In this document: piece by piece, positions 1,868 to 60,705 of the stretch | How the letters are laid out: every line of letters starts with the position of its first letter | How positions within the stretch are numbered: position 1 is the stretch's first letter | Source: Magallana gigas | Taxonomy: Eukaryota | Assembly: GCF_963853765.1 (NCBI RefSeq) | Contig: NC_088853.1 | Coordinates: 40,362,001-40,426,000, forward strand | Length of the DNA: 64,000 nucleotides | Reading direction: 5' to 3' | Notes under the pieces: generated by a model | Told to the model about the DNA's origin: nothing | What the model saw: only the letters and a program-made list of their open reading frames with translations | Databases searched by the model: none | Position numbers and translations under genes: made by a program

Positions 1868-2722
1868 CCACTTCTGTGCCACAGGGCCGATTTTGGGCCG
1901 ATCACACAGTTGTCCAGAGTGCCACGGGGCCGATTTTAGGCCGATTTTAACTTTACACTTTTTCCATATGATTTATTAAATATACGTCAATAAATATAAA
2001 AGCATCGTATGTTATTATGAACAATAAAGTATCCAATTGTAATTTATTGACATATTAATTTATTATTTTGATTTTTAAAAGAGATTTATTGCGCTAGAAT
2101 TAACGGATTTCTTGATACATAGTTACACAAACTAAGATCTTTTTATCTGCCATCAAAATTTGCATAATTATTATATCAATTGTTGAAATAAAACTTAATG
2201 TGGTTTTTTTTATTGCTAAACATTACACTAAAACAGCATATGTTCATGTGCATTAATTTTATTAATTCATCGTAATTAACATATTGTTGCATAATTTTGT
2301 TCCGATTGTTTGTTTCTCAATAACTTCAAAAATTCAAGCAACAGATAATATTATTGCCCTAAATTATTTTTAAAATGTTTACGCAATGCATGCATGTATA
2401 TTATTTTCGAAACATATAATTCTTAAAAATAATATCAACATTGAAAAGAATGACATAAATGACTTCCATAACGCGGTATTTTGTTATAACGTCATTTTAC
2501 GTAAATGACGTCATAATAACACGTGCGTTCTGCCTTGCGCCGTACAAGATGGCTGGAGTGTGGTTCCGTGTATTGCCGCCTGAACCGGTGCAAAATAAGC
2601 CATTCACTGGGAACCCAGGGCCAAAGAACATGCCGGCGAGAAATGCATCTCCGTTGGAATATTTTCTTTTATTCTTCAACCTAAACCTAATACGAGAAGC
2701 TGTGCGTCAAACTGATAGGTAT
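1868..2722 (+). mobile_element. Left end and 5' part of a piggyBac transposon, truncated
   Basis: TTAA (1864-1867) then CCACTTCTGTGCCACAGGGCC, the inverted match of 1697-1717 with 1 mismatch. An internal TGCCAC repeat lies 43 bp inward, and a transposase 5' fragment follows. Confidence 0.7.
2548..2722 (+). pseudogene. N-terminal fragment of a piggyBac (DDE_Tnp_1_7/PGBD) transposase
   Basis: MAGVW...FTGNPGPKN...SPLEYFLLFFNLNLIREAVRQTDRY matches the conserved PGBD start (GP...SPxxxFxLFF...IVxxTNxYA). Homology stops where the tandem-array flank begins. Confidence 0.75.
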
Positions 2723-2759
2723 CGTATCCCATAATTTTTATAAATGATTTGGTATTGCA

Positions 2760-5700
2760 TGATGTAAGACTGTACAGGTCATATACTTCGTGTACAAAAT
2801 TGTATAGGGCGTATACTTTGTGTGCATAATTTCGTGTATACATTGGACCATATATAACCGATGATACATTGTGTATACTTAGTGTAAACGGTCTATACGC
2901 TTTGTACATTGGGTATACGTCGTGCAAACGGCCTGTACAGGGCGTATACTTTGTGTGCACCATTTTGTGTATACATTGGACCATATATAACCGATGATAC
3001 ATTGTGTATACTTGATGTACAAGGCCTGTACGCTTGGTACGTTGGGCATACGCCCTGTATAGGACGTATACTTCGTGCAAAACATTTGGTGTATACATTG
3101 GACCATATATAACCGATGATACATTGTGTATATTTGGTGTAAACGGTCTATTCGCTTTGTACATTGTGTATACTTGGTGTAAATGGTCTATACGCTTTGT
3201 ACATTGTGTACACTTGGTGTAAACGGTCTATACGCTTTGTACATTGGGTATACGTGGTGTAATCGGCCTGTACAGGGCGTATACTTTGTGTGCACAATTT
3301 CGTGTATACATTGGACCATATATAACAGATGATACATTGTGTCATTGTGTATACTTGGTGTACACGACCTATACGCTTGGTATTAGGCATACGCCCTGTA
3401 CAGGACGTATACTTCGTGCACAAAATTTGGTGTATACATTGGACCATATATAACCGATGATACATTGTGTATACTTGGTGTAAATGGTCTATACGCTTTG
3501 TACATTGGGTATACGTGGTGTAAACGGCCTGTACAGGTCATATACTTCGTGTACAAAATTGTATAGGGCGTATACTTTGTGTGCACAATTTGGTGTATAC
3601 ATTGGACCATATATAACCGATGGTACATTGTGTATACTTGGTGTAAACGGTCTACACGCTTTGTACATCGTGTATACTTGTTGTAAATGGTCTATACGCT
3701 TTGTACATTGGGTATACGTGGTGTAAACTGCCTGTACAGGGCGTATACTTTGTGTGCACCATTTGGTGTATACATTGGACCATATATAACCGATGATACA
3801 TTGTGTATACTTAGTGTAAACGGTCTATACGCTTTGTACATTGGGTATACGTCGTGCAAACGGCCTGTACAGGGCGTATACTTTGTGTGCACCATTTTGC
3901 GTATACATTGGACCATATATAACCGATGATACATTGTGTATACTTGGTGTAAACGGTCTATACGCTTTGTACATTGGGTACACGTGGTGTAAACGGCCTG
4001 TACAGGTCATATACTTCGTGTACAAAATTGAATAGGGCGTATACTTTGTGTGCACAATTTGGTGTATACATTGGACCATATATAACCGATGATACATTGT
4101 GAATACTTAGTGTAAACGGTCTATACGCTTTGTACATTGGGTATACGTCGTGCAAACGGCCTGTACAGGGCGTGTACTTTGTGTGCACAATTTGGTGTAT
4201 ACATTGGACCATATATAACCGATGATACATTGTGTATACTTGATGTACACGGCCTGTACGCTTGGTACGTTGGGCATACGCCCTGTATAGGACGTATACT
4301 TCGTGGCCAAAATTTGGTGTATACATTGGACCATATATAACCGATGATACATTGTGTATACTTGGTGTAAACTGTCTATACGCTTTGTGCATTGTGTATA
4401 CTTGGTGTAAACGGTCTATACGCTTTGTACATTGTGTATACTTGGTGTAAATGGTCTATACGCTTTGTACATTGGGTATACGTGGTGTAAACTGCCTGTA
4501 CAGGGCGTATACTTTGTGTGCACAATTTGGTGTATACATTGGACCATATATAACCGATGATACATTGTGTATACTTGGTGTAAACGGTCTATACGCTTTG
4601 TACATTGTGTATACTTGGTGTAAATGGTCTATACGCTTTGTACATTGGGTATATGTGGTGTAAACTGCCAGTACAGGGCGTATACTTTGTGTGCACAATT
4701 TGGTGTATACATTGGACCATATATAACCGATGATACATTGTGTATACTTAGTGTAAACGGTCTATACGCTTTGTACATTAGGTATACGTCGTGCAAACGG
4801 CCTGTACAGGGCGTATACTTTGTGTACAAAATTGTATAGGGCGTATACTTTGTGTGCACAATTTCGTGTATACATTGGACCATATATAACCGATGATACA
4901 TTGTGAATACTTAGTGTAAACGGTCTATACGCTTTGTACATTGGGTATACGTCGTGCAAACGGCCTGTACAGGGCGTATACTTTGTGTGCACAATTTGGT
5001 GTATACATTGGACCATATATAACTGATGATACATTGTGTATACTTGATGTACACGGCCTGTACGCTTGGTACGTTGGGCATACGCCCTGTATAGGACGTA
5101 TACTTCGTGCACAAAATTTGGTGTATACATTGGACCATATATAACCGATGATACATTGTGTATACTTGGTGTAAACTGTCTTTACGCTTTGTGCATTGTG
5201 TATACTTGGTGTAAACGGTCTATACGCTTTGTACATTGTGTATACTTGGTGTAAATGGTCTATACGCTTTGTACATTGGGTATACGTGGTGTAAACTGCC
5301 TGTACAGGGCGTATACTTTGTGTGCACCATTTGGTGTATACATTGGACCATATATAACCGATGATACATTGTGTATACTTAGTGTAAACGGTCTATACGC
5401 TTTGTACATTGGGTATGCGTCGTGCAAACGGCCTGTACAGGGCGTATACTTTGTGTACAAAATTGTATAGGGCGTATACTTTGTGTGCACAATTTCGTGT
5501 ATACATTGGACCATATATAACCGATGATACATTGTGAATACTTAGTGTAAACGGTCTATACGCTTTGTACATTGGGTATACGTCGTGCAAACGGCCTGTA
5601 CAGGGCGTATACTTTGTGTGCACAATTTGGTGTATACATTGGACCATATATAACTGATGATACATTGTGTATACTTGATGTACACGGCCTGTACGCTTGG

Positions 5701-6199
5701 TACGTTGGGCATACGCCCTGTATAGGACGTATACTTCGTGCACAAAATTTGGTGTATACATTGGACCATATATAACCGATGATACATTGTGTATACTTGG
5801 TGTAAACTGTCTATACGCTTTGTGCATTGTGTATACTTGGTGTAAACGGTCTATACGCTTTGTACATTATGTATACTTGGTGTAAATGGTCTATACGCTT
5901 TGTACATTGGGTATACGTGGTGTAAACTGCCTGTACAGGGCGTATACTTTGTGTGCACCATTTGGTGTATACATTGGACCATATATAACCGATGATACAT
6001 TGTGTATACTTAGTGTAAACGGTCTATACGCTTTGTACATTGGGTATGCGTCGTGCAAACGGCCTGTACAGGGCGTATACTTTGTGTGCACCATTTCGTG
6101 TATACATTGGACCATATATAACCGATGATACATTGTGTATACTTGATGCACAAGGCCTGTACGCTTGGTACGTTGGGCATACGCCCTGTATAGGACGTA
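2760..6199. repeat. Modular tandem array (10/30/40-bp modules, 122-213-bp units, 631-bp higher-order repeat)
   Basis: The anchor CATTGGACC occurs 22 times from 2841 to 6105. Spacings: 133,122,213,128,163,173,133,163,133,122,213,173,163,133,122,213,163,133,122,213,133. All short ORFs here are repeat artefacts. Confidence 0.97.
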
Positions 6200-6291
6200 T
6201 TTATCGTGCTATTCCAGACCTTTAAGTCCATGTGCTGCCAAATGTAAGGCCATGCGAATTTGAGCATTTTCCTTGCAAAGAGTCTATGGTG

Positions 6292-6299
6292 TGACGTCA
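6292..6299. promoter_or_regulatory. CRE-like palindrome TGACGTCA in the CpG-richer spacer upstream of the MULE ORF
   Basis: Exact TGACGTCA about 210 bp upstream of ATG 6510. Another copy at 2506-2513 precedes the piggyBac ORF. Function is inferred only. Confidence 0.25.
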
Positions 6300-6509
6300 T
6301 CACATTTTTAGTTGACATTTCTATATTGCTGCTGAAGTGGTCGGATCGTCTTGTGTTCAGTCGGCACTTATTCTCTAGAGAAGCCACACCGTTTAGTAAA
6401 TTCAATTAATCTTTCCATTATTAAACGCTCGTATTTCTATCGTAATATATTTACAGTGTATTCTATAATTGAAAGTTGCATGGTGTAGATTCAAATAGAT
6501 GTCATCAAA

Positions 6510-7964
6510 ATGAAAAGGCTATGCGGACCGAGAAAAAAACACAAATTAGATTATTGTGTTATTGGCCAATATTTAAGACAATTTTGTACAACCACAAATG
6601 ACAATGACCTTACTGACACCGGTCCTTACGGACAAACAGCAACCTCTTTGTTTTGGTCAAATTCGATCAAAAATAGGAAACATGTACAGGTTGTCTGGAA
6701 GGAGAATAGGGGTAATGTACAAAATGAAGGTGAGTTGGTGTCTACAAATCCAGTTAAAAATGATAATAAAGATGAAGACAGCAATGACAGGAATGTTAAT
6801 ACTGGGTTTGCCAAAGAAAATGAAAGTCAGAAGAAGTATTCAATCGGCAGAAAACGAAATAGACTCTCCTTTAATCGGAATAAAGAAACTATCAGCATCT
6901 CCTCGGATGAAAGTGATGACCATATCACGAGATCAACTCGAAAATTAAGGAAACAGAAAACTCCTTTCACCCCATCAATCAAACCAAAATCACCTACTGT
7001 ATACTGTATTTGCTCAAAACATTACACAGAAGTAGACAGCGGTAGGATGATTGAATGCCAGGGTTGTAGGAACTGGTATCATTGCTCATGTCTTTCACTA
7101 CCGGTATTAGAGTCAGAAATTTCCGGTAAGCATATATTCTTCAAATGTGGCCGAAAGACATGTAACAATGGTCAGTTTGACTACAAAGTAAAGGGAATAG
7201 CTATAATGCCAGACACGCTTGTTCTGCAAAACATGAACAGAACGGAACTCTTGATCGCTAATGTAGAAAAAAGATCAAAACGTATTCAGAGAGAAATTAA
7301 AGAGTTTTCAGATTCCAATGAATCTTTCCAATATCGAAAACTATCAGAACAACTAACAAGGTGTCTTTTAGAGCTAGATAGTATTGATACACACCAGCAA
7401 CACCAAATGAGGTCTTTACGAAAAGCTACCATTGACAATATTCACTTGATTATAAAAGAACTAGACGCGTCAGTAGTTAGTAGCCAACATTCCAAACGCA
7501 GGGATACAATTCCCAAGCAAGAGGAGTCTGATGAAAACAATATTTCAAATTTTACTGCTAGAATTAATGAAACATCCCCATTTCGCTTACCAGACCCTAT
7601 AGAAGAAACTGTTGCTGACATGAACGTTGAAAATGTATCGCTGGAATCTGCAACTCCGCTTAATTCCTTTGAAGAGAAACAAACAGATGTCGAGGAATGT
7701 CAGTTAAACCATGCAGAAATAGAACAGATCCTTAATGTCCAATTGCCATCCTTCTTTACCATGACATTGCCTACAAGTAGTTCTTTTATATTATCAGATG
7801 AAGATATGGTGCATCTGAATAATTCTCAAAATGGCCGTTGCTACAAAAAAGGTCACTGGCAACACATATTTGCAAAAGGAATAGCAACGTCAAACAAGCA
7901 TTGCGTTTTTATGTTTGATAAACATCAAATCAGCACAGCTAAAAAAAAGGAGAAAGAGGCGTAA
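6510..7964 (+). CDS. 5' part of the NOF-like MULE polyprotein: N-terminal region, PHD finger, BAG domain, start of the transposase N-terminal Zn-binding region
   Basis: PHD: YCIC...MIECQGCRNWYHCSC...C-x4-C (~7002-7163). BAG-like: YRKLSEQLTRCLLELDSIDT...MRSLRKATIDNIHLIIKELD (~7245-7470). The C-terminal HWQHIF...HCVFMFDKHQI continues into the next ORF if one A is removed from the A8 run at 7941-7948. Confidence 0.8.
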   Translation: MKRLCGPRKKHKLDYCVIGQYLRQFCTTTNDNDLTDTGPYGQTATSLFWSNSIKNRKHVQVVWKENRGNVQNEGELVSTNPVKNDNKDEDSNDRNVNTGFAKENESQKKYSIGRKRNRLSFNRNKETISISSDESDDHITRSTRKLRKQKTPFTPSIKPKSPTVYCICSKHYTEVDSGRMIECQGCRNWYHCSCLSLPVLESEISGKHIFFKCGRKTCNNGQFDYKVKGIAIMPDTLVLQNMNRTELLIANVEKRSKRIQREIKEFSDSNESFQYRKLSEQLTRCLLELDSIDTHQQHQMRSLRKATIDNIHLIIKELDASVVSSQHSKRRDTIPKQEESDENNISNFTARINETSPFRLPDPIEETVADMNVENVSLESATPLNSFEEKQTDVEECQLNHAEIEQILNVQLPSFFTMTLPTSSSFILSDEDMVHLNNSQNGRCYKKGHWQHIFAKGIATSNKHCVFMFDKHQISTAKKKEKEA

Positions 7965-10900
7965 TGTGCCAATGTTCAAATGCAAAGGACACTGCAAGTT
8001 CAAGGATTGTTCAGTCAAGGTCTATGTTGAAATGTTGGTTCCTAAAATGGTAAGTGTTTTTTATTCTGGTAACATGGAACACAAGATTACCGATCAACAT
8101 GCCAGACCAATAAGAGCCACTCAAAGAGAAATACTGAAGGAATCTTTCAAAAATGGCGGTAAACCCTTGAAACATTTCTTAGAGGCATTTGAAAAAAAAG
8201 ACACGGACCAAATTATATCCGGAAACTGCGATAATGTAGGTAAAGACGCACACGTCTTCCGACAAATATCTTCAGAAAGCAGGCAGATTGGTCGAATGGA
8301 CAAAGATTTAATTCAGTCATTGCTTACAATTATGAGAACGAGCAAGGAAAATGGATTTGGGTTTATTCAGCAACTTTCAGTAAAACCTTTCACTGTACAG
8401 TATTGGTCTGAAGAAGGTCTACGGCTATACCATAGCTTAGCAGAAAAAAATATTGTTTTCTGGGATGCCACAGGCAGCGTTGTCCGTAAAAGCGATGATG
8501 GTAAAAGGTTTCTGTACTACGAGCTTGCCCTGAGGCATCCAGTCAAAGGAAAGATGGGCATTCCTGTCTCTTCTATGGTGACAGATGACCAAAGTTTGCC
8601 ATCTATCTTGAACTGGATTGCACGTTTTAGACACGACGAGAAGAAACTCTTTGGGCATGGAAATGTTTCCCAGCCGAAAATGATTATAAGTGATGAATCG
8701 TGGGTTTTTATAATTGCTGCATTGAAAGAGTTTAATACAGAGACCCTGGCAGAATTTTTGAATAGGGCATGGAGAATTGCTAACGAACATGAACCAAAAG
8801 AAAGGAAAGACAAAACAATTGTTCATCTTTGTACGGGCCACTTTATGAATAAAGTAAAACGGTTCTGTTTGCAGAATTATAAACGCAATATAAAGTTTGG
8901 GATGTACCTTGTAAGTTTATTGCTAAATTGCAAAACCTTAAAGGCAGCAACAGAAATTTTACATGATATTTCTGTTGCGTTGCTATCAAAAAATATTACA
9001 AGTGCTAACAGACAATTTATTGATCGTTTGATGCAAAAAATCAACAAATTTGACACAAAGGAAAGTTCTTGTTCAGAATTGCCAGATGACTCTGAGAAAC
9101 ATTGCGAACAACAGAAGCCAGGTTTTTACACCGAGGAGGCTTTTATTAGTTTAGCTGGGACGTCGCCATTCAAACAATGGGCATGTGGTATAGTGGAAAG
9201 AACGCGAAACAGTTTACACATCTCTGATGAAAAGTCTATTAGAAATCCTTACTATTCTGAGGTCTTCTTGCAGCAAATACTCGACAGATACATCCCTATA
9301 TTACCACTATGGGGGTCTCTGATCTTACCAAGCGATTCTTCAAATGCAAAACATCATTCTATATACAACACTGGTGACATATGCAAGACCCAAAGTACAA
9401 TAGAAAACAGGTTTCGTATTTTGAAACAGATATCACTTGGAGATAATAAAAACAGACGTTTAGATGATTTCTCTGAGGAACTCAGAAAACATACTGTTTC
9501 AATTCAACGTCTGGTTGTAAAAGACACTTTAAAAGCTCCAAGTAATCTCAAAAGAAAAAGGTCTCAAAGTACTTTAAAGGAAGCATGGAGCAAGAAACAG
9601 AAACCTTTGAACATTTCAACAGAGACAGGAGATTTTCAAAAAACCCCTACTAAGGTTATCAATCTCCCAGAGGTAGTTACCCTCACAGAACACAGGGATT
9701 TGTTCAGTGGAACAAAAGTGTGTCCGATTGACAACTTGGGTTCTACCTGTTGGTTCAACTCGGTAATGCAAGCTGTGAGCGGATGCAAGATGTCTGAATC
9801 CTTGCAAAACCACGAAATGATTATTGATGTAGACAAGGATTCGTACAACACACTGAAACGTTCTGTCATTTCTCTTTTAAGAACTATGTCGAAAAACAAG
9901 TGTACAAATACCAAGGCCCCTAGAGAACAGGTAAGGCAAGCTCTGTCTGACATCGCTAAATTCGAAGGAGAACTTGGTGCAAATTTGGGGCAACAGCATG
10001 ACGCAAATGAATTTTATTTAAAAATAGTCTCCCCAATAGCCAAAGACATTGGTGAACAACTTCAAATCCAACAAGCCTTTAATTGCATTGACTGTAAATA
10101 CAGAAACTGTATAACAGAGTGTCTTGTCAATTCTATTGGGCTTACTGTACCAAACGATGCATCCGATGCGTCAATATCCTCCTTGTTGAACTACTATTTT
10201 GAACATGAAATTCGAGAACAATGTCAAAAGTGCTCAGGTTTATTGTATTTGCAGCAAGAATTGACTAAAATCCCTACAACTCTTGTCCTCACCGTGAACA
10301 GGTTTCAGTATAATGCTGCAACCTCAAACATGTCAAAGCTCAAAAAGAGCATTCAAATTGACCGTGAAATAGATCTTTCAAAACATGTCAAAGGTGTTTC
10401 AAATTGCAGGTACGTATTAAAAAGTGTTGTTTGTCACCACGGACGATCTATTAATTCTGGCCACTACACGACAAATCTTATTGCAAACAATTCAATTGTG
10501 AAAGTTAGTGATGCAAACGTGTCTGTTGGTTCCGAAAATGAAATGCAAAGAGACTGTTATGTTCTGTTTTATGACAGGCACGTTAATTTGCCTGATTTTG
10601 TCAAGCCAGCATTAGAATGCATAGGCAACACATTAGCAAATACTGTTTCTGCATCATGCCAAAACCAAAGTACAGTCCAAGAAATGTTTATTCCCGCTCT
10701 TCTAAAACAGGGAGACATAGACACGGCTGTATCATTGATTTCCAAAAATGTTGACGCCTTTACTTCAAACAACTATTTCAATATGTTTGAGGTTGTTTTG
10801 AAAACAATATTTGGTTGTGGTAAAGAGGCTTCTTACAAAGTCAGTGCTCATAGCTTTCTCTTGTCCAAAGTCCGTGTAAGTGTTTGCAATGTATGCAAAA

Positions 10901-12024
10901 ATAAAATGATAGAAAGAGATGACAGTTTTTGTGTGTTGAAACCACTAACTTTATTTCAAACAGATATTGTCAATTCCTTTGCTGCTTCTACGAACATGTG
11001 TAGCCATGATGTAAGCTCAGATGAATATATCTGCAGTTTACCTGAAAGCATGATTTTGTGTCCCCAGCAAACGATGAAAGCAACTGATATGGCCTTGGCA
11101 GAAATAGATTTGGAAAGTAGTATGAAAACAGTTTTTCCGTTAGTTAGCAGGCAGTATCAACTTTTACTCACTGTGGTGAAAGACGAGGGGATTGTTAGAA
11201 TAATAAAGCATGGACCAACAAATAATACCAACAATGAGTCAACGCCATGCGTGTTGAAAGAGACAGCAGAAGTAGTTGCGACAGTTTACGATCTGAAACC
11301 GAAATCTGCGTCATTCACAATAATGCCGACGTCCAGACTTAAGGAAGATTGTTTTACACCTTTACGAATTCCAAACAAATCGTTCAAAGATAGTTTACAC
11401 AACCAGGATGTTGTCCATCAAAATGGAACAATATCTCTAGACACAGCCCTGTGTATGGCAAGAGACACATACTGGCTGTCTAGTGATGATGTTAATAACT
11501 ATATGAAAATGTTGTGTTTGATGGCCCCAGAAAAGGTACATTTTGTCGATGCCGGTTGGTTTAGCCATAAAATCTTAAAAGATGAAACACTGACATCCTC
11601 CGTCTTCAGTTTAGAAAACAGCAAACAAAGTTGGTTTGGCAAATCTAAAGTTGTTGTTCCTATAAATCTTAGAAACGTTCATTGGGTGTTAGTTGTTATT
11701 GACATCAAAGAGAAGGTTATGTATTTTTGTGACTCAAAGGGAGACCCACCAAAAATAATTTTACTGCAAATAACTCGGTATATTTCATACGAGTTCTTAA
11801 TGAGGTTTGGTAGGAAACTAGACCTGTCAAAGTGGAAATATATCGAGTTCTGTAAGGAACTTAATTTTCCCATACAGATAGACGATAGCAGTTGTGGAGT
11901 TTATATTTGCGAGATGGCAAAATCAATCCTTTACAAAAAAAGAATATATCACCACAACAAATTGGCGACACGAATGAGGGCTCAAGTTGTACGAGAATTG
12001 TACTCCGGTTCAATTGAGTTTTAA
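7915..12024 (+). CDS. 3' part of the NOF-like MULE polyprotein: DDE transposase, USP (peptidase C19) deubiquitinase, Ulp1 (peptidase C48) protease
   Basis: MULE core: FWDATG (D 8464), ISDES (D 8692), CTGH (CxxH), IENRF (E 9403). USP: NLGSTCWFNSVMQ (Cys 9748), QQHDANEF, VVCHHGRSINSGHY (His 10462), VSDANV. Ulp1: VPINLRNVHWVLVVID...CDS...QIDDSSCGVY (His 11680, Cys 11893). Confidence 0.88.
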   Translation: MINIKSAQLKKRRKRRNVPMFKCKGHCKFKDCSVKVYVEMLVPKMVSVFYSGNMEHKITDQHARPIRATQREILKESFKNGGKPLKHFLEAFEKKDTDQIISGNCDNVGKDAHVFRQISSESRQIGRMDKDLIQSLLTIMRTSKENGFGFIQQLSVKPFTVQYWSEEGLRLYHSLAEKNIVFWDATGSVVRKSDDGKRFLYYELALRHPVKGKMGIPVSSMVTDDQSLPSILNWIARFRHDEKKLFGHGNVSQPKMIISDESWVFIIAALKEFNTETLAEFLNRAWRIANEHEPKERKDKTIVHLCTGHFMNKVKRFCLQNYKRNIKFGMYLVSLLLNCKTLKAATEILHDISVALLSKNITSANRQFIDRLMQKINKFDTKESSCSELPDDSEKHCEQQKPGFYTEEAFISLAGTSPFKQWACGIVERTRNSLHISDEKSIRNPYYSEVFLQQILDRYIPILPLWGSLILPSDSSNAKHHSIYNTGDICKTQSTIENRFRILKQISLGDNKNRRLDDFSEELRKHTVSIQRLVVKDTLKAPSNLKRKRSQSTLKEAWSKKQKPLNISTETGDFQKTPTKVINLPEVVTLTEHRDLFSGTKVCPIDNLGSTCWFNSVMQAVSGCKMSESLQNHEMIIDVDKDSYNTLKRSVISLLRTMSKNKCTNTKAPREQVRQALSDIAKFEGELGANLGQQHDANEFYLKIVSPIAKDIGEQLQIQQAFNCIDCKYRNCITECLVNSIGLTVPNDASDASISSLLNYYFEHEIREQCQKCSGLLYLQQELTKIPTTLVLTVNRFQYNAATSNMSKLKKSIQIDREIDLSKHVKGVSNCRYVLKSVVCHHGRSINSGHYTTNLIANNSIVKVSDANVSVGSENEMQRDCYVLFYDRHVNLPDFVKPALECIGNTLANTVSASCQNQSTVQEMFIPALLKQGDIDTAVSLISKNVDAFTSNNYFNMFEVVLKTIFGCGKEASYKVSAHSFLLSKVRVSVCNVCKNKMIERDDSFCVLKPLTLFQTDIVNSFAASTNMCSHDVSSDEYICSLPESMILCPQQTMKATDMALAEIDLESSMKTVFPLVSRQYQLLLTVVKDEGIVRIIKHGPTNNTNNESTPCVLKETAEVVATVYDLKPKSASFTIMPTSRLKEDCFTPLRIPNKSFKDSLHNQDVVHQNGTISLDTALCMARDTYWLSSDDVNNYMKMLCLMAPEKVHFVDAGWFSHKILKDETLTSSVFSLENSKQSWFGKSKVVVPINLRNVHWVLVVIDIKEKVMYFCDSKGDPPKIILLQITRYISYEFLMRFGRKLDLSKWKYIEFCKELNFPIQIDDSSCGVYICEMAKSILYKKRIYHHNKLATRMRAQVVRELYSGSIEF

Positions 12025-12222
12025 ATAGATGGAAACTATGATGCTGATTACCGTTGTATAAGAGATTGCTCGCCAACAACTTTAATGATCATGTAAAGAA
12101 GTTAACCATAGGAATTTTCCAAGAAACTTTTTCACGTTTTTGCGAGTATAGAAAAATGTATGATGGTTTTCCCGTATTGTAAATATTGTGTGACGTAGCA
12201 TTTTCTTTAAAACCAAACAAAC

Positions 12223-14900
12223 AACGTAACAGTGGAAAATCTGGGAAAACAGTATATGACTCTATTATTGTTATCATTTAGTTTTGTCTCTCTCAAAGAA
12301 GAGCTTATTCTTAGCCATAGTGTTTTTTCTTTGCTTGCTGAAATAAGTCTGTGATTTAGGTGTACATATTTTAAATGTGATTTTAAGACGGAAAAAGTTA
12401 CCCATATTCAACTGTTTTTTTCTTTCTTGATATTGTTACTTTGTCTTTGTCACTGCGAGACGGAAATACAATATAGTTAAATACCTCAATTGTTTTAATC
12501 GCACAGATTATTTGTTACTAAACAATAATTAAAAGCATTCTGTATTTGCTAGTAAGAGTACTAATGTTACTTTGAAATATTTCAAACAGTTCCGGGTAAA
12601 ACTAACTAAGATGTAACTATTTGATAACCATTTGCTTTTATTTTTACCAAAGATGTATATGTAGTTATGCGATATTGTCTGATAAGGACAGTGAACGTTA
12701 CTCTTTCACCGTGCATGCATAGTATTACTGTTTCTTTTTTGCATGAAAATTACGTTACAGCTCATAAGACTATTGCTAGTTCACTCCTAAGAACCTTTTG
12801 TTATCACGCAGATTTGTCCTTCTCGGGAAAAGCTCATTCTTTGTTTTGCTAAAATTGGGACTGAGATTAAGGTGTGTGTATATATATTAGAATGCCATTT
12901 TGTAACAAAATTAAGAATTGATCTTTGTTATTTTGCTGAGCACAGTTACATTTTTGCCTCTGCTGTTACATTTTTGCCTCTGCTGAACTAGATCTGGTTT
13001 AATAACCAAAATCAAGATAGTGAACTTTTCTAAATTGCACGAAACATGTTGCTATACAATAAAAGCATTTAGCATATTCAAACGGGGATTAAGGTTACTT
13101 TGAAAGAACTCAAACAGTGACGAAGTAAAATTAACAAAAAATGCCAACCCATGCCAAACAACCATTTTCTTTTATTTGCTTCTTCTCTAAATCAAGGATG
13201 CTTATATATTTTTTTAACCAAAGATGTACAGTATATATAGTTATGCGATATTGTAAATATGTGTTTGTCTAATAAGACAGGGAACGTTACTTTTTCACTG
13301 TGCGAGCAAATTATTATTTTGTATTGTCCGTTTTAGGTTGAAGTGTACTCCAGTTTAAATGATTTTTTATGAAAATAACAGTACTGCTCATATGGGTATT
13401 GCTAGTTCACTTCTAAGAACCTATTATTATCACATAGTTTTGTCCCTCTCAGGAAAGAGCTCATTTTTGTTGGTTTTGCTAAAATTTAGACTTAGATTAA
13501 AATGTGTATATATATATTTATACCAGTATATTAGAATGGCATTTTATAAGAAATGATCTTTATTATTTTGCTGAGCACAGTTACGTTTTTGTCTCTGTTG
13601 AACTGGTTTTGGTTTAATAACCAAAATCAAGACAACCAACGTATCAGTGGAAAATCTGGGAAAACAGTATATGACTCTATTATTGTTATCATTTAGTTTT
13701 GTCTCTCTCAAAGAAGAGCTTATTCTTAGTTGTAGTGTTTTTTCTTTACTTGCTGAAATAAGTCTGCGATTTAGGTGTACATATTTTAAATGTGATTGTA
13801 AAACGGAAAAAGTTGCCCATATATAACTGCTTTTTGCTTTCTTGATATTGTTACTTTGTCTTTGTCAGTGCTAAACGGAAATACAATATAGTTAAATACC
13901 TCAATTGTTTTAATCGCACAGATTATATGTTACTAAACAATAAATAAAAGCATTCTGTACTAGTATTTGCTAGTAAGAGCACTAAGGTTACTTTGAAATA
14001 TTTTAAACAGTTCCGAGGTAACACTAAGATGTAACCCAAAAAACCATTTGCTTTTATTTTTACCAAAGATGTCTATATTAAAAAGTTAAATCCTTCCCAA
14101 GCCAATCATGGCTTATAAGGCTGGTGCTTATACCCGGTTTCCGTGGTGCTAAGCGGATGAGAGTCGCAGACTCCCCCTGGATGGGACACCAGTGCATCGC
14201 AGGTTAACTCCCCAGCCTAAGCCGGTACCCATTTTCAGCTGGGTGGACTGAGACAACGCAGATTAAGTGTCTTGTCTAAGGACACAACACACAACATCAA
14301 CCGCCCACAGTGGGATTTGAACTGGGGACCTCTCGGTTACCAGCCAAGCCACTAGAACGACTGAGCTATGTGCTCCACAAAGATGTCTATATAGTTATGC
14401 GATATTGTAAATATGGGTCTAATAAGGACCTGCACTGTGTACGTTTTGTTCGTTTTAGGTTGTCAGGTTGTATGAGATGTGTAATCGGGTTTAATTAATT
14501 TTAAGAAGGATGGATGTTTGAAAATAGCGGTACTGCTTGTAAGACTGTTTAGTATTGCTAATGAATTTGCATGTCAACTATTTTGATGATCAGGGTTGGA
14601 AGTTAATCCTAGTTATATAGTAAAGGAAAATACTGGTATGTATAAGAAATACAGCATTACTACTCTTGGGTATTTAGTTTTATATTGAAAATATCAGTTG
14701 TTTCCGTAACAACAACTAACGTAAATATGGAAAATCAGGTAAACATAAAAACAGTGAATGGGTTACTCCAACCATCCTACTGTTACATTGTAACACTTAC
14801 ATTGTCTCTCTCTAAGAAGATCTTATTCTTTGTTGATTTTGTTTTGCCGAAAGGATGATCAAGTTTGTAATTATGTCACAAAACTCAGTTCCCTTTATTT
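12223..14900. repeat. Degenerate tandem repeat of ~0.6-0.8-kb units (about 3 and a bit copies)
   Basis: AACGT(A)xCAGTGGAAAATCTGGGAAAACAGT at 12223 and 13639, degenerate near 14716. CAAAGATGT...ATAGTTATGCGATATTG near 12649, 13220 and 14064/14378. GGTTTAATAACCAAAATCAAGA near 12997 and 13612. Confidence 0.85.
14079..14377 (-). mobile_element. Full-length tRNA-derived SINE with a conserved central domain (V/CORE/Meta-type superfamily)
   Basis: Minus strand: TAGCTCAGTCG (A box)...GTTCAAATCCC (B box), then GTGTCCTTAGACAAGACACTTAA...CCACCCAGCTGAAAATGGGTACC and GGTGTCCCATCCAGGGGGAG. 15-bp TSD CAAAGATGTCTATAT at 14064-14078 and 14378-14392. Confidence 0.88.
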
Positions 14901-21106: not shown

Positions 21107-24100
21107 ATGCCACCTTGTCCAAAACATTTGCTTATCCTGTTTGACTGGGATGGCTGTACTGCAATCATTGAAAGTTCCAGAGTCCAATGTTCAAGGAAGA
21201 AAGTTCTTTCAAAGTCCAGCAGGGGAACTCTTTCATATGAAGGACGACTTCACAAAGTAGAAATTCTAGAACTTTCAGGTAACGACCAAATGATATTTTT
21301 TTTACTTCTTAAGGTCAGACGACACGTTGATCAATTTTATATATTAACTTTTTCCAGGAATTTGTTAATGGTTTACTGGTACTCTGACAAGCTTTCTTGC
21401 AAAAAATTAGGATACCCTACCAGGCATTTTTGCAAAATACTAGAGATTGCAATTTCCTATGTAATCTTGTAAATAAACTTGAATTGCTGATCTAAAAATA
21501 AATAAATACAGCACAATGAATATGACTATATTGGGCCGGGCTTCGAACTCAAAACCTCTAGAGCCTCGCTCCTGGAAGAGAGCGGCCACGGCTCTAACCA
21601 CTCGGCCATCTAGGCATATATCCGTATACAAGTAAATTTTAATCATTTTAAAAATCATCATAAAAATAATAATTTTTATTGGAACTCTTTATTATGAGGA
21701 GATACAAAAAAAATGCTCAAGAAATGTGTCGTCTGACCTTAATTCTTATTTCATAACAAAATAATTTGTAATTTATAATTTCATGAATACTACACTAATG
21801 TGTCAAAAGTATGTCAACTTTTTTTTTCTCTATATATTTCATTGAAAACAAGACTAATATTTAAAAGGGTTTTTTTGTTATTTTTCGTCAGGTTTGAAGA
21901 AATTTATGTTGATTAAAGGAGATTCAATTTGCACTTTTTGACAAACATTGAAATGGTTTTTAAACAACTCATTTGTAAAATTTTGATGTTTCAAACACAA
22001 CATGAAGATATTTTTTATGTGCTCTGCTAAATATCTTTTGTAAAATGGGAGCCCAAAAATCTTACGTTGGATTGTGAAAATCATATCACAAGAACTGAAA
22101 GACATTGACATACTTTTGGCACCTGTATCTACTCTCAAACAAAACATTACTGTTCATTCAATTCTAATAAGTTATAAGTCAATACCTCGAAAGAAGGGAG
22201 GGCATATTGCTTTGCTGCTGTCTGCCTGTCGGTTAGTTGGTTGCTCGGTCCACTATAGTTTCAGTTCATTTTCTTCACAGAGGTTTGCACATATTGTAAT
22301 GAAATTTGGTATACTGATAAATCGTGTCAATATCTAGGTCAAATTCAATTTTGGGTACAATCTATCAATTTTAGACAGAGTTATGCCCCTTGGACTCAGA
22401 AAAATTCTATTTATTTACAGTTTACGTTCATTTTTTCGTGGATGTTTCCATAGGAGGGGGCATAAGTGTTCCACAAACATCTCTTGTTAATGAATTGGTT
22501 CATGTCTAGGAGCAATGTTGCATGACCCGATTATCTCTAAAATAATGTGAATACATTTTTATAACAGATGGATAGTTATTTGATTTCAGAGTTATGATAC
22601 ATGTACATGTACTTGACTTTCATTTGTAGACTCGAAAGAAGAACTTGAGGACTATGATACTGAATGGGAACAGACACACCGTGCACTTGCCATATCCAGT
22701 GAGAGGGAGAAACGGCAGAATTCAAAAGGGAGAAGGAAGATGGGTGGATATTTAGACATTTGGAATGATCCAGAGAGTATCACATCTGATAATGATGAAG
22801 CTGCAGAAGATATTCCTAGTACATCCCAATCCCAGGTAGCTATGATTAAACTTTAAAACTATTAAACTATAACTTATTTTAAACATGTATGTATTTTGCC
22901 ATAATTATTTATGGGTATTAATTAAAATGTTTATGTTTTTTCTGTATCAATGACAATCACCCAACTCTTCCCTCCTGTTTATATGTTTATTGTATAATCT
23001 TTTTATTGCCCCTTGAGGGCCCTTAATTGACCAATAAAGAAGTTGAAATTTAAACAAAATTTTTACACTTTCAAGGTTTATCACCACTTTGAAGACAATT
23101 AGTTGCCCGGGGGGGGGGGGGGGGGGGGAGGGGGGGGGGTTAAAAATGTCTTACCCATCAGTTTATTGGTCTTTCGGGCACAAATAAAATTATAGTTTGC
23201 TTGCCCTCTAGACTTTGTCTGAACTCAAACATTATGACAGTTATAACATAAATGAAGTAAATTATTTTTAGCATTACTCCTTTTGATGATATTTTGACTT
23301 TTAATTGTGTGTCCAAGAAAACCCAAATAGCAATAATTTTGATCTTTCTATTTTAAGTTAAATTACCATAACAAAGGAAAAGAAACATTGTTTTTTGTAC
23401 AGATGGCTCTGAATGGGCCATTCATATAACAAAAGAGTGACTATTAATTAAGCAATGTTGTGCATGTACATGCACAAAATTTATGCCCTAGAATTTATTT
23501 TGAGAATCATAAAATGGTATAAATTTAACACCGTCTTTATTGTATTACAGCAGCAACAATCACAGCAAGAGGATACACCAGTCAGCTCAAGATCTTTTAA
23601 AGAGGTATGTTTTTTTTAACAATGCAGTGTAAAAGAATTATAGTTAATTTGGCCAAATATCTGCCCCCAATCTTAAGAAATTTTCAAATACTAAATAGTA
23701 CCCAAATCAGATCTTCGTAAAACCATTAACAGATGTTGTCTATTGCATTATTCTTAATATTAGTCATTAAAGTCAACAGCCCAATAGATGTTTATCAATG
23801 ATATCACTAAAATAGGTTAATTCCCACAATTATTCAAACAAATGAATATATTGTCAATTTTCCATCATATTTTGCCTTTGGAAGTATATCTTTGCTGGAC
23901 TTTAATATCAGGGGTGAAAAATTGTAATCTGTCCTTTTGTGTGGAGTAATATATATATGTATCTTAACGTAACCTGTCATATTAAAGTAAAACCTTCTTT
24001 TTCAGGGATCCAAAGGCCGCAAGATTACAGTTTTGTTTGAAGGACTGGCTGACACAACAAATTCAGATATTTCACCAAAACGTTCTCCAATGTATTTGGA

Positions 24101-25151
24101 TGATCTGACAACAGATGAACAAGAAATCGTCGTTCAACAAGTTCTGTACTACGAGCAAGGGAAAACAACATCTTCTTCCCAAACAGATAAGGTTATAGTG
24201 ATTCAGGATGAGAAAGAAATTTTGGAGCTGATTACAGACAGCAAAGTAAAGAAAACATCTTCCACCCAAACAACATTGGTATCAACAAAAGTGACAGCCA
24301 CGCAGACAGCCACACAGACTGCCACACCGCCCATACAAAAGCCTGGCCCGACATTTGCAGATGCCGCTGTGCAGACTTGTCTTTCTACACCCCAAGAAGA
24401 TTACGCCCGCAGGATGGAACGCAAAATTGATGAAATTCTATCCATTGTGAAAAAGAACGACCGCCGTGATCAGTCTCTTAGTGTGAGTGAGGTGTACCAG
24501 TGGGCAATGGCCAATGTACCGAATGGGAGCACTATCCAGTCAACTCCAACTATATCCATCTACAGAGAGGAAGATAACATGGAAAACACTGCTACGCCTA
24601 TTGAAACAACTCCAAGGACTATGAGCATTCCATCTGTTGTAACCGAGTTGTCACCAATCACCAACTCGGAGAACATTCAGAGGGAAAGTGTTAACAGCCC
24701 CGACACAGATGCTGCAAATTCTAATGTGACTGTGCCCAAAAAAACCCTGTGTGATCGTGAACCACTGAAAGAGTTGGTGCCAAACAAGAAGAGAAGACGA
24801 ATCCTGGTTCCTAACTGTAAGAAAGACTACACTGTGAAAGAAATCTCCTGTCCAGAGGATGTTGAGGCCGGGCAGTATGAATTCAAGATGCGAAGAGAAC
24901 AACTTGAGAAGCTGCATGGATCCTCCTGTTCAGAGGGGAACTTTTTGTGGAATGTTGTTAAAACGGTGTATTCTGACCATGAACTCGTTGGAAATAACTT
25001 TTTTGGAAGAAAGAACAGACCCGCTCTATCCCCTCGCCGTGTGCATCTTATTGAACATTGTTATTTGGACTTCTGTGGTGACAACATGGACGAGTTCACA
25101 AAGGCTGTGAATGTGATCAACAGTGGAATCAGAGCAATTTCCAGGAAGTGA
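21107..25151 (+). CDS. Spliced BEN-domain protein gene (~525 aa)
   Basis: Exons 21107-21278, 22630-22835, 23551-23604 and 24006-25151 have GT-AG borders and join in frame (…ILELS/DSKEELED…SQSQ/QQQSQQ…FKE/GSKGRK…). C-terminal BEN-like motif: FLWNVVKTVYSDHELVGNNFFG…PALSPRRVHLI…AVNVINSGIR. Confidence 0.8.
21313..21738. mobile_element. MITE with TTAA TSD (Kolobok-type) in the BEN gene intron, carrying a tRNA-like segment
   Basis: TTAA-GGTCAGACGACAC ... GTGTCGTCTGACC-TTAA (perfect 13-bp TIR). On the minus strand, 21533-21612 reads TGGCCGAGTGGTTAGAGC…GAGTTCGAAGCCC. Confidence 0.9.
22181..22488 (+). mobile_element. Non-autonomous Helentron-associated (HINE/pearl-like) element
   Basis: 5' GAAAGAAGGGAGGGCATATTG, a degenerate CTGTC/GTCGG microsatellite, a core with ATGAAATTTGGT…TAGGTCAAATTC…GAGTTATGCCCCTTG, and 3' GGAGGGGGCATAAGTG…CTCTTGTT. 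Confidence 0.7.
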
Positions 25152-57916: not shown

Positions 57917-60223
57917 TTACTCCTCTACCTCACTGTCATCACTGTCCTCAGATTCGTCAATGACAGCTGCATCAGTGACAAACTCGGACCAGTCTTGAAT
58001 AGACGAAATAGCCTCCCTGTTGTGTCTCCCAACAGCGAGAAACCAGATAACGGCGGCGACATGGGAACATACTCCCACAACACGGGCACCCGCTCGACAT
58101 CTGCAATACCATGCAGTGATATCAGACTCGGAAAACTGGATCCAGAGCAGATACTGTCGGGAAGAAACATGACGACTCTGTAGCTTGACCCTGATAAGCC
58201 CATGGAACTCACTGTGTACCAAGATATCCACATCCCCCTCCAAATACTCCTGAATATAACTTGGACACAACTTCAGTTGATAAACTCCACAGGTCAGATT
58301 TCGTATGTCATCTTCGCTGATGTTGGGGAATTCCAAAGAATCAGTAGCCACTTCCCACTTTACAGACTTCTTATCCAGACAGTTTTCTTCAACAAATGTC
58401 TTTAAAGAGTTAACTTTTGTTGACAAATACCTCATTTTGCATGCAAGGGCCATGTCTTCATCTTCACTTCCTGTCGACAGAGGCTTGCAGTAACGGTTGG
58501 AGAGGGCACACACGATGCGCACATAGTCACCGATAAATGGCACTTGATTGGTTGGAAGAACATGAGCAAGGTACTTCCATCGCTTTATCCTTGCATTGGC
58601 TGCCTCAACAACCCAACGAATCTGAAAAGTTAAGAACAAGCACCACTCATAAAAAAGGTAAAAGTGCCTTATTTAAAATTAACAGTTGGTATATTTCTTT
58701 ACTAAAAGAAAAAAAATTTAAATGATGAAAATCATAAAATCAATGATTTGGAACAGCATTTGTTTATATTTCAGATGAAGACAGATGTAGAATAATTGTA
58801 TAATGTAATTGTATTGAAGTTTTTCTGACATCATGATTGATGATTGAATTTATTTTGTAGGTCTGGTAATCAAAATATGAAAACAACTAACCTTGGTGAC
58901 CAGACGAGAGGCATTGGCATCTAAGGTTGTCATCTGCTTCTGTCCTCTGCTCATCAGGCGAGGCATTTCGGCCCTTATTCCCAGCTCCTCGAGCATATCG
59001 ACTGAATCTCGGAAGCCTCTGTCTACAACAAAAACATCATCTTCATGGAACCAGCCCTTCAGATCTTCTACATTGGTATGAAGCATATGGTTGAGGATAG
59101 TGGCATCATTATTCCTAGCTAGGTAGGGTCCAAGAACTGTTAGAAAGTATCCGTCTGTGGATGTGACAACCATGGGTTTAACAAGGGGCCTGCCTTTATG
59201 TAAACTATATGATTTCCGTTGAAACTGGAAGTTGTTACTTTTCTGAATATATATATAAGTTCCATCCAAAACAGCAATAGCTTTCTTATTTGTAAAATCA
59301 CCAAAAAGTTCCTGTGCCAGAGGTCTTGTATGATTTTCTATAATTTCTTCTCTTGTTGTATGTTGTAGTCCAAGATGATGTGGTACAAATGACTTCATGA
59401 GTGCTGTACGGACTGATTTTACTGCTCTACAGAGGGAAGACTTTGAAATTCCAAAAATCGTGGCCAGAAGTTGATTTGACATTCCTGATCTCAGTTTTAG
59501 AAGAAAGATTCCAAGTGACATCCTTGTGCCTCGGTTTTGTGTGTTTCGAATATCACTGGAAATAAAGGAATGGAGGTCTTCAAAGTTTTCTTTAGAGATA
59601 CCAGTCAGTGCCATATAATCACTGTTGCTCATGGTAGACAGTTCAAAAGAAAATCTGCTTGTTGAGGTCTGGAGGGCATAATTTCGTATTTTTTGGATCA
59701 GTTCCAGCACTGTTGACTTGTTTACAAATGAAGACTCGAATGTCTGTATTTTGGTCAAAACACCAGGTCTAAACTCTCCTTCATCAATGTGGGATGGACA
59801 ACATCTGCTTCCAGGTGGGATGATGATTTCATGGTGAAGAAAGGCTGAAAATCTAGCTGCTGAAGACACGACAACAAGTTTAGGACCCGGTCGCTTGCAG
59901 ATTAAGCAGTAAGCATGTGAAGAAGGTGTTCTCTGGAGAGGCAAAGATATAGATGGTGGACTGCACATTCCTGGTTGTAGAGGCTGACACACAGGAAGGG
60001 AACTAGACTTCTGCTGGCATGTTTTCTGGTTTCCATGGTAGCGATGTCTGCACTTGTTGCACAAAATGTCATTTGAGTTTGCCTCAACAAGAAAGTTCTT
60101 TCTGAGGAAGCGACGGATTGCTGTTGACTCACATTTTTTTCTGTCATTTGGCCTTGTTCTTTTTTTGCAAAGGATGCATGGGAAAATCTTTTTACTCTCT
60201 GTTTTCATTTGATCTTCATTCAT
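57917..60223 (-). CDS. Intact Kolobok-type DDE transposase (DDE_Tnp_4 fold with C-terminal SWIM), 2 coding exons, ~678 aa
   Basis: Exons 60223-58892 and 58621-57917, GT-AG, phase 0 (LVTK/IRWVVE). N-terminal Cys/His clusters (CILC, CNKC, CLIC, CCPSH); DDE motifs VLDGTY, VVDRGF, VVEAANAR; SWIM CRCRAGARVVGVCSH. Confidence 0.88.
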
Positions 60224-60705
60224 TTTTATGTTCTGAAAATACAAAACAAAAATGTAGTGATACACAACTTTAATGTTCACTAAAAAATAAAGATATCATT
60301 TTATATGTATTGTGAATATTTATGTTTACAACTACTAAGCAAATACTTGCAATGTATCAAGTATAAATTAACTTTATAGAAAAACTCAAATTGACAAACT
60401 GTAGAATTACAGTGCCCCCCCCCCCCCCCAATGTATTAAATGGAACTGTCAGTCTAATATTTTTTGGAGCTGCAGACCTTCAGTTGTGTTACAAGTGTTG
60501 TTTTTGACATGTGATCAATATATTATCATTTACACATATTTTTCTAGATTAACTTTAATTAATTGCTATAATATGATGATAAACTATAATTGCCAAATTA
60601 TGATGAAAATGGTTTTTTTAGGGGGGGGGGTTATAGAAAAAAAGTGTATATTGAAAAAAGGTGTACTCAATAATTTTTCTATCCAATATTTAAAGAAAAA
60701 AATAA

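Follow-up and report, generated by a model that had tools for sequence, protein, structure and literature searches.

What kind of gene occupies positions 6510 to 12024 of a 64,000-nucleotide stretch of the Pacific oyster genome, where two overlapping open reading frames (ORFs) hold a transposase-like core together with a PHD finger, a BAG domain and two different peptidases? The stretch comes from Magallana gigas (NCBI RefSeq assembly GCF_963853765.1, contig NC_088853.1, positions 40,362,001 to 40,426,000 of the forward strand). It contains no N and is called the window here; coordinates refer to the whole window, and P0001 numbering refers to the intact protein of 1841 amino acids described below. 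The evidence favored one answer, to which we assign a probability of roughly 60%: the locus would be the transposase gene of a NOF-type Mutator (MULE) DNA transposon resident in the oyster, encoding a PHD-BAG-core-USP-Ulp1 fusion, and transcribed.

Gene structure and transcription

The following features define the gene and its transcript.

6510-7964, + strand: ORF1, 484 amino acids, the N-terminal part of the protein, ended early by a frameshift
7915-12024, + strand: ORF2, 1369 amino acids, the remainder of the protein
7941-7948, + strand: homopolymer of eight A residues (A8), in which one surplus A splits the gene in the window assembly
6200-6509, + strand: 5' leader and probable promoter region, with RNA coverage from at least 6250 and an RNA contig beginning at 6328
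12025-12259, + strand: 3' untranslated region, transcribed to at least 12249 (RNA depth of 4.95 in the bin 12050-12249)

An earlier reading made from the letters of the window (the sequence-only reading) had proposed that a single-base correction merges the two ORFs into one frame of about 1837 amino acids. They overlap around the A8 run, and deletion of one A indeed gave exactly 1837 codons. An intact version was also found. With a word-indexed protein search, we recovered from a Logan assembly a protein of 1841 amino acids (P0001), which heads a 90%-identity cluster of 441 sequences. It is encoded without interruption by a 6100-bp Logan contig (L001), which was 99.6% identical to and colinear with the window from 6171 to 12259; the only differences between the two were an absent A in the A8 run and a 12-bp in-frame insertion at 11006. 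This in-frame indel of 4 amino acids accounts for the step from 1837 to 1841.

The P0001 sequence is continuous across the junction (...STAKK-RRKRRNV...). The run was A7 instead of A8, with the base at 7941 absent, in 9 of 10 raw poly-A RNA reads from run X23, and likewise in a DNA contig from run X1, an RNA contig from run X15, L001 and another Logan contig, L004. In addition, a block conserved in the family spans the frameshift site, with W450, N462, C465 (33/33) and F469 in ORF1 and C495, C500 (33/33) and H524 (35/35) on the ORF2 side (P0001 numbering), and the alignment of a medaka relative starts upstream of the site. Because of the A7 alleles, the read-through in P0001 and the conserved block across the site, ORF1 and ORF2 make up one protein, and they are one intron-less gene of 1837/1841 codons. 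The extra A in the window is either a private or rare allele or a homopolymer assembly error. A programmed frameshift at the A8 run was ruled out by the A7 run and the continuous frame in the DNA of other animals and by the same 9 of 10 RNA reads.

In a stranded poly-A library, all 305 of the 305 reads had a single orientation, which corresponds to sense RNA in most stranded libraries. RNA depth was even, at 3-15x, across 6250-12249, with no joints. The gene is transcribed whole, from the sense strand, as unspliced poly-A RNA. Introns, and with them a spliced host gene, were ruled out by the lack of joints in the RNA reads and the colinearity of the contigs. Five other RNA runs contained 37-68% of the sampled words of the gene, and the stretch was present in at least 20 runs from 12 studies. 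A palindrome, TGACGTCA, lies near 6293 in the 5' leader.

The transposase core and its accessory domains

The protein was divided into the following parts.

7005-7139, + strand: PHD finger of the BPTF/EBS/ING type, ORF1 residues 166-210 (Pfam PF00628, E value of 2e-6)
7254-7469, + strand: BAG domain, ORF1 residues 249-320 (Pfam PF02179, E value of 1e-12, positions 1-77 of 78)
7851-9609, + strand: predicted NOF-type Mutator-superfamily DDE core, an N-terminal Cys/His module followed by an RNase H fold with a helical insertion domain
C465, C495, C500 and H524 (P0001 numbering), + strand: Cys/His module of the core, spanning the frameshift
8464-8466 (D), 8692-8694 (D), 8830-8832 (C), 8839-8841 (H), 9310-9312 (W) and 9403-9405 (E), + strand: catalytic codons of the core
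9727-10572, + strand: USP/UCH domain (peptidase C19), ORF2 residues 605-886 (Pfam PF00443, E value of 1e-29, full model)
9748-9750 (Cys), 10462-10464 (His) and 10510-10512 (Asp), + strand: catalytic codons of the USP
10573-11469, + strand: weakly conserved USP-C48 linker of about 300 amino acids, with the 12-bp in-frame indel polymorphism at 11006
11470-11934, + strand: Ulp1/SENP domain (peptidase C48), ORF2 residues 1186-1340 (Pfam PF02902, E value of 1e-13)
11680-11682 (His), 11731-11733 (Asp), 11875-11877 (Gln) and 11893-11895 (Cys), + strand: catalytic codons of the C48 domain

The D-D-CxxH-E set of the core corresponds to D184, D260, C306/H309 and E497 of ORF2. In an alignment of 41 cores of the family, D652, D728, C774/H777, N912, P932/W934 and E965 (P0001 numbering) were invariant or nearly so, C774 being near-invariant and H777 invariant. 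The CxxH motif also occurs in hAT and P transposases, so it is not specific to MULEs. An AlphaFold model of the core, built on the family alignment, had a predicted local distance difference test (pLDDT) score of 82 and a predicted template modeling score (pTM) of 0.73. The first Asp lies in a strand (163-169), the second directly past the fourth strand (239-242) and the CxxH motif directly past the fifth strand (285-288), while the Glu lies in a helix (477-490) behind helices 306-460. As modeled, this is the layout of an RNase H-type transposase with the Glu behind an inserted helical domain.

A sequence profile of the core gave no matches against the PDB. The IS256 group is regarded as the bacterial sister of eukaryotic Mutator elements, and the best solved-structure match of the modeled core was an IS256 transposase, ISCth4 (PDB 6xgx/6xg8/6xgw), at 12% identity and a root mean square deviation (rmsd) of 5 Å. 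ISCth4 is a bacterial protein of about 400 amino acids that has no accessory domains. The fold was nearer to Mutator/IS256 transposases than to other DDE superfamilies. Among predicted structures, the top match was a cluster carrying the automatic label "120.7 kDa protein in NOF-FB transposable element" (template modeling [TM] score of 0.65 over 430 residues, rmsd of 3.5 Å), followed by a run of PF10551 MULE clusters with TM scores of 0.50-0.58. A medaka protein (P0196) belongs to the NOF-FB cluster (score of 0.98) and was 27% identical to the oyster protein over 661 residues (E value of 4e-59); its C48 domain aligned as well. RepeatMasker tables list "MULE-NOF" as an established class of repeats. 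The model and the alignments thus support a NOF-type Mutator (MULE) transposase core, by way of the NOF-FB cluster and its medaka member and not by way of Drosophila NOF itself.

The PHD finger scored 28.0, slightly above the 24-bit cutoff. Its best solved-structure matches were EBS, SHL, BPTF, PHF2 and Spp1, all of them readers of H3K4me3. Both the zinc-ligand pattern and an aromatic cage were present, the last Cys pair being spaced Cx4C. Aligned to the solved readers, the cage positions are Y165, Y172, M180 and W189 (ORF1 numbering), which we take to correspond to Y10, Y17, Y23 and W32 of BPTF. These alignments support a PHD finger of the H3K4me3-reader type. The BAG domain matched the solved structures of BAG4/SODD, BAG5 and BAG3 at E values of 1e-6 to 7e-3. 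In the USP, the boxes NLGSTCWFNS, SGHYT and VSDANVS aligned with the Cys, His and Asp boxes of USP4 and USP21, and in the C48 domain, the motifs VHW, CDS, PIQ and SSCG aligned with their equivalents in SENP5 and SENP1, that is, with the triad and the oxyanion Gln. The linker between the two peptidases was about 20% identical among relatives. It had USP-like atlas neighbors at 0.86-0.88, no more than a lead to a possible second USP-like domain in degenerate form; its fold prediction, with a pLDDT of 49.7, was too poor and was not interpreted.

The sequence-only reading had listed a PHD finger with Y/M/W cage residues, a BAG-like helical domain, a NOF/MULE core with the complete D-D-CxxH-E set, a USP with intact Cys/His boxes and an Ulp1 with intact His/Asp/Gln/Cys. 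Every item on this list held up: the catalytic set in the 41-core conservation and the AlphaFold placement, the NOF/MULE assignment in the predicted-structure matches and the medaka sequence relative, and the four accessory domains in their Pfam models and in the alignments to solved readers, BAG proteins, USPs and SENPs. The profile search recovered the PHD, BAG, UCH and C48 domains, and the transposase core was missed by every Pfam model.

The spread of the core was examined by an exhaustive HMMER search. At an E value of ≤1e-3, the family comprised 1393 clusters at 50% identity, 125 of which had an E value of ≤1e-30. It ranges from cnidarians to fish, with members in Pinctada imbricata, Mya arenaria, two sea cucumbers, the rotifer Adineta, medaka and the cnidarian Clytia. 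Among 35 long members, UCH was found in 13, C48 in 10, PHD in 9, Macro in 1 and BAG in 1 (the oyster protein only), and neither PF10551 nor PF00872 matched the core at an E value of ≤0.001. BAG was present in several close relatives at 40-80% identity to the oyster protein. The medaka protein has the order core-C48-PHD, and in Clytia the core is followed by a USP-like segment. UCH and C48 occurred jointly in 8 of the closest 14 proteins, and a relative at 30% core identity retains core-UCH-C48. Because a distant relative keeps this arrangement and 8 of the 14 closest carry both peptidases, the dual-peptidase arrangement is, judged from these sequences, an old and widespread trait of the subfamily and not peculiar to the oyster locus.

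A close counterpart was a Pinctada imbricata protein (KAK3092502.1, FSP39_003739; "Ubiquitinyl hydrolase 1" in UniRef) of 1842 amino acids, with 55% core identity and likewise encoded without introns. Its order, BAG twice, core, UCH and C48, is that of the oyster protein save for the doubled BAG; Pfam detected no PHD in it at an E value of ≤0.01, its flanks are unrelated, and it is annotated as hypothetical only. A 441-bp tandem duplication at 9866-10720 of a Pinctada contig (L002) overlaps the 5' end of the homologous ORF, which explains the two BAG domains of the Pinctada protein. A metagenome locus scan with the single protein returned no relatives. An NCBI entry labeled "MAG: Sedimenticola sp." (P0033, 530 amino acids) is a fragment of the family at 41% identity and most likely comes from host DNA that contaminated the bin. 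In a distant core-UCH-C48 relative, an array of repeats of about 187 bp with inverted units (L014 12026-12366 and L016 10208-11144) sits about 2.4 kb downstream of the ORF, and its orientation differs among three metagenome assemblies.

Mobility, selection and rival explanations

Two repeat structures adjoin the gene.

2760-6199, + strand: satellite-like hierarchical tandem array (Tandem Repeats Finder), with 20/40-bp subunits and higher-order units of 122-173 bp and 341 bp
12209-14076, + strand: local rearranged duplication (self-BLAST), in which 12209-12660 matches 13623-14076 at 90%

The array is 3.4 kb long and ends about 310 bp ahead of the start codon. Its 20-bp unit matched 48 times, always on the + strand and within 2865-6148, whereas chance alone would give 0.01 matches, and contigs of other animals begin in the last unit of the array (6171). 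It is a possible Foldback/NOF-style arm, on one side only. On the other side, the duplication includes two further pieces at 72-75%, such as 12735-13017, which matches 13363-13632 at 75%. This local repeat is why the short-read contigs stop at 12259.

Several results weigh against the transposon reading. With Pfam, neither PF10551 (MULE) nor PF00872 (Transposase_mut) matched the core at an E value of ≤1, and the link to NOF runs through the named NOF-FB cluster and its medaka member. No terminal inverted repeats (TIRs) and no target site duplication (TSD) were found within the window, nor was a second copy of the gene or any other fragment of the family. A second copy of the array, in either orientation, was not found in the 64 kb by BLAST or with the 20-bp unit at 3 mismatches. 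A short-word comparison of the left and right flanks (E value of ≤0.05) gave no inverted match here or at the Pinctada locus. Every contig recovered for the lineage shares the flanks of the window, so only one locus is documented. Finally, strong long-term selection and stable expression also fit a domesticated gene, and the 22 polymorphic sites described below are too few to separate relaxed from moderate constraint. The sequence-only reading had taken the locus for a transposon, and on this point it was not supported, as no TIRs, TSD, second arm or second copy were found in the window. It had also named a single-copy, syntenic, intron-containing locus as the mark of a host gene; the gene is intron-less, and a limited test gave no synteny. 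In that test, the flanks showed no coding similarity to those of three homologous loci, the flanks being short and the test weak, and no flanking synteny with Pinctada was seen within +/-10 kb. Because the array is one-sided and terminal repeats were undetected, the copy at this locus is probably fixed and possibly immobile.

Other routes to the ends of an element were also followed and abandoned. A right foldback arm was sought by BLAST, with the 20-bp unit and by short-word comparison of the flanks, and none was found. The contigs L014 to L016 of the distant relative proved to be colinear alleles and yielded no ends. No published oyster satellite was recognized in the array, its unit sizes differing from those of CgiSat33 (105 bp) and CgiSat25 (88 bp); it was also unmatched in the text of the satellitome supplements, which may lack consensus sequences.

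Selection and allelic variation bear on whether the gene is kept by the host. Compared with L013, a 71%-identical paralogue or orthologue, the proportion of synonymous differences (pS) was 0.70-0.76, which is saturated, and that of nonsynonymous differences (pN) was 0.09-0.20. The resulting ratio of nonsynonymous to synonymous rates (dN/dS) was ≤0.12 across all domains, and about 0.12 for the USP-linker-C48 region. This comparison shows long-term purifying selection on the whole protein, as far as sequence divergence can tell. Within the species, 15 of 22 listed polymorphisms were nonsynonymous, against 17.4 expected if neutral. L004 and its relatives have the A run intact and carry three deletions, of 1 bp at 8348, 8 bp at 8919 and 1 bp at 10750, and many members of the 441-sequence cluster are truncated products on full-length contigs. 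Broken alleles segregate, and the copy is now probably decaying in part of the population. The contigs with broken ORFs (L004 to L010) share the right flank of the window to 12874, which rules out separate insertions and leaves alleles or inseparable copies. A paralogue of about 73% nucleotide identity, itself broken, was found in the same SRR6063xxx run series as the intact contig.

Two side observations concern single runs. In RNA of run X23, a 2-bp deletion at 7156 was present in 3 of 3 covering reads, at very low depth; this animal would express a frameshifted allele. In run X1, a 495-bp contig (depth of 6.9) replaces 321 bp at 10101-10423 by a diverged stretch of equal length. It accompanies the main contig (depth of 21.8) and represents a second allele or a second copy; contig depths of this kind are no measure of copy number.

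The strongest rival to the transposon reading is a domesticated host gene, that is, an immobilized NOF-type transposase kept as a chromatin or ubiquitin/SUMO-pathway factor. We consider it unlikely, while a serious contender. It would account for a single documented locus shared by many animals in 12 or more studies, for the undetected TIRs and TSD, for the stable sense-strand poly-A expression, for a dN/dS of ≤0.12 against the paralogue in all domains, and for a Pinctada protein of equal length and architecture at 55% identity. However, several independent frameshift alleles segregate, that of the window included, and the changes within the species are mostly nonsynonymous. The gene is intron-less inside an intron-rich genome, keeps the full catalytic DDE set, shows no synteny with Pinctada within +/-10 kb and has diverged, broken paralogues in the same SRR-series runs. 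The family, with about 1400 clusters and shuffled accessory domains, also has the appearance typical of active transposons.

According to a second alternative, the gene is the autonomous partner of the gene-less foldback transposons of the oyster, the upstream array being one arm and the other arm lost or outside the assembly. The nearest named relatives of the core are indeed NOF-FB proteins, the long TIRs of NOF_FB contain satellite-like repeats, and the array adjoins the gene in all sampled animals. Against this, no inverted copy of the array exists across the 64 kb, its unit sizes are not those of CgiSat33 (105 bp) or CgiSat25 (88 bp), it has no match in the satellitome supplements (a weak blank), and around homologues from other species the arrays do not form inverted pairs. 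We regard this alternative as distinctly improbable. The last one, a self-processing precursor of 1837 amino acids cut by the USP and/or Ulp1 into transposase, reader and protease products, would suit two peptidases in a single chain with weakly conserved linkers between, but is very improbable because such enzymes cleave after the C-terminal Gly-Gly of folded ubiquitin or SUMO and Pfam detected no ubiquitin-like module in the protein. The term polyprotein used in the sequence-only reading is accordingly replaced here by multidomain fusion, as neither a ubiquitin- or SUMO-like module nor a processing site was found.

Further features of the window were recorded. A 91-amino-acid ORF at 2459-2734 (+ strand; …FTGNPGPKNMP…SPLEYFLLFFNLNLIREAVRQTDRY) stops exactly at the start of the array. 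Its sequence seems similar to the lead-in at the N terminus of piggyBac-type transposases; it gave no Pfam match and has no downstream continuation. An older element or exon may have been cut short here by the array, and the ORF was dropped as a marker of an element boundary because of the blank Pfam result and the missing continuation. A MITE-like (miniature inverted-repeat transposable element-like) 34-nucleotide inverted repeat at 1689-1722 and 1863-1896 is 91% complementary, with 140 nucleotides between its halves. At 57917-60280 (- strand), adjacent ORFs of 476 and 240 amino acids carry HTH_Tnp_4 and both halves of DDE_Tnp_4, which suggests a PIF/Harbinger-type transposase whose parts are separated by a frameshift or an intron. 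At 34439-35260 and 35617-37039 (both + strand), kringle-like motifs, seen by eye only, are followed by a reverse-transcriptase-like stretch […VGVRQGENLSPFLFSLYINDLE…], and this region also holds a 300-amino-acid ORF with no Pfam match. A 372-amino-acid ORF at 24033-25151 (+ strand) had a subthreshold BEN domain (E value of 0.087) as its sole Pfam signal.

Relation to known systems and proposed working

The nearest described system is FB-NOF of Drosophila, whose NOF protein (the "120.7 kDa protein", class DNA/MULE-NOF) gives its name to the cluster described above, in which 45% of the members have Peptidase_C48 and 34% have PHD. According to a Dfam 4.0 preprint, NOF_FB belongs to the foldback transposons, and its long TIRs contain satellite-like repeats; the satellite-like array beside the oyster gene is reminiscent of these arms. 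Unlike FB-NOF, the oyster locus has one array and no inverted partner; a second arm may have been lost or may never have been there. The oyster protein also adds USP and BAG to what is found in NOF, and its PHD finger is N-terminal, whereas that of the medaka protein in the NOF cluster is C-terminal.

Mutator elements with Ulp1 have been described from hydra, lancelet and plants, and Ulp1, OTU and PHD have been described in Ginger1 (Bao, Kapitonov & Jurka 2010, PMC2836005). The plant KI-MULEs, CUMULE and VANDAL20, the MuDR-type elements of Hydra and lancelet, and Ginger1 combine a transposase with C48 and sometimes PHD, as in the oyster. In contrast to the oyster protein, these elements hold one peptidase type per protein and are reported with neither a USP-Ulp1 pair nor BAG, and the core of Ginger1 is of the integrase type. 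Joining of a C19 hydrolase to a DNA transposase also has a precedent, in Trichomonas vaginalis XP_001314237.1, where Peptidase C19 accompanies a transposase_11 (IS4/IS5-like) domain (cited in PMC2836005). This fusion, however, is from a protist, belongs to a different transposase superfamily and lacks C48, PHD and BAG.

A literature search, with Repbase Reports outside its scope, returned no papers with USP and Ulp1 on one transposase, none with a USP on a Mutator/NOF core and none with BAG in any transposase. The novelty assigned to the combination in the sequence-only reading needs to be narrowed accordingly. Ulp1 and PHD in Mutator elements and C19 on another transposase are published (PMC2836005); what is new in the searched literature is a MULE/NOF core that bears both USP and C48, plus BAG in a transposase.

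If the gene does encode a NOF-type transposase, its parts may work as follows. The DDE core would cleave and join DNA ends, by analogy with other MULE/IS256 enzymes. The PHD finger would bias binding toward active (H3K4me3) chromatin. Ubiquitin and SUMO could be stripped off by the USP and Ulp1, whose targets may be the transposase itself, chromatin, or factors of silencing, repair or turnover, and the BAG domain could engage Hsc70, either to fold this very large protein or to remodel the transposition complex. It has been suggested that the ubiquitin/SUMO pathway takes a share in transposition and that the ubiquitin-pathway domains of transposases are active while it proceeds or afterward, such as in DNA repair (PMC2836005). 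The toolkit of the sequence-only reading, meant to counter silencing, to target active chromatin and to recruit Hsp70, is an inference of the same kind. A bolder proposal joins two claims, that the NOF-type enzyme and its paralogues mobilize the gene-less, satellite-armed foldback transposons of the oyster, and that its modules serve as a counterdefense against SUMO/ubiquitin silencing. We rate the two together as a long shot. If true, the modules would target active chromatin and remove marks of silencing or of transposase turnover.

Ulp1-type proteases have been known in transposons for about 20 years, and we know of no demonstrated role for them. The oyster gene offers a natural protein in which a complete DDE core is joined to a chromatin reader and to two proteases of different type for ubiquitin-like proteins, and its intact alleles and transcription make it a ready substrate for direct tests. 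The family to which it belongs is large, animal-wide and without a Pfam model; because its members are labeled only "hypothetical" or "ubiquitinyl hydrolase", genome annotations probably mistake these genes for host deubiquitinases when they encode transposases. For the oyster itself, the enzyme is a concrete candidate for the one behind the foldback elements that carry the published satellites.

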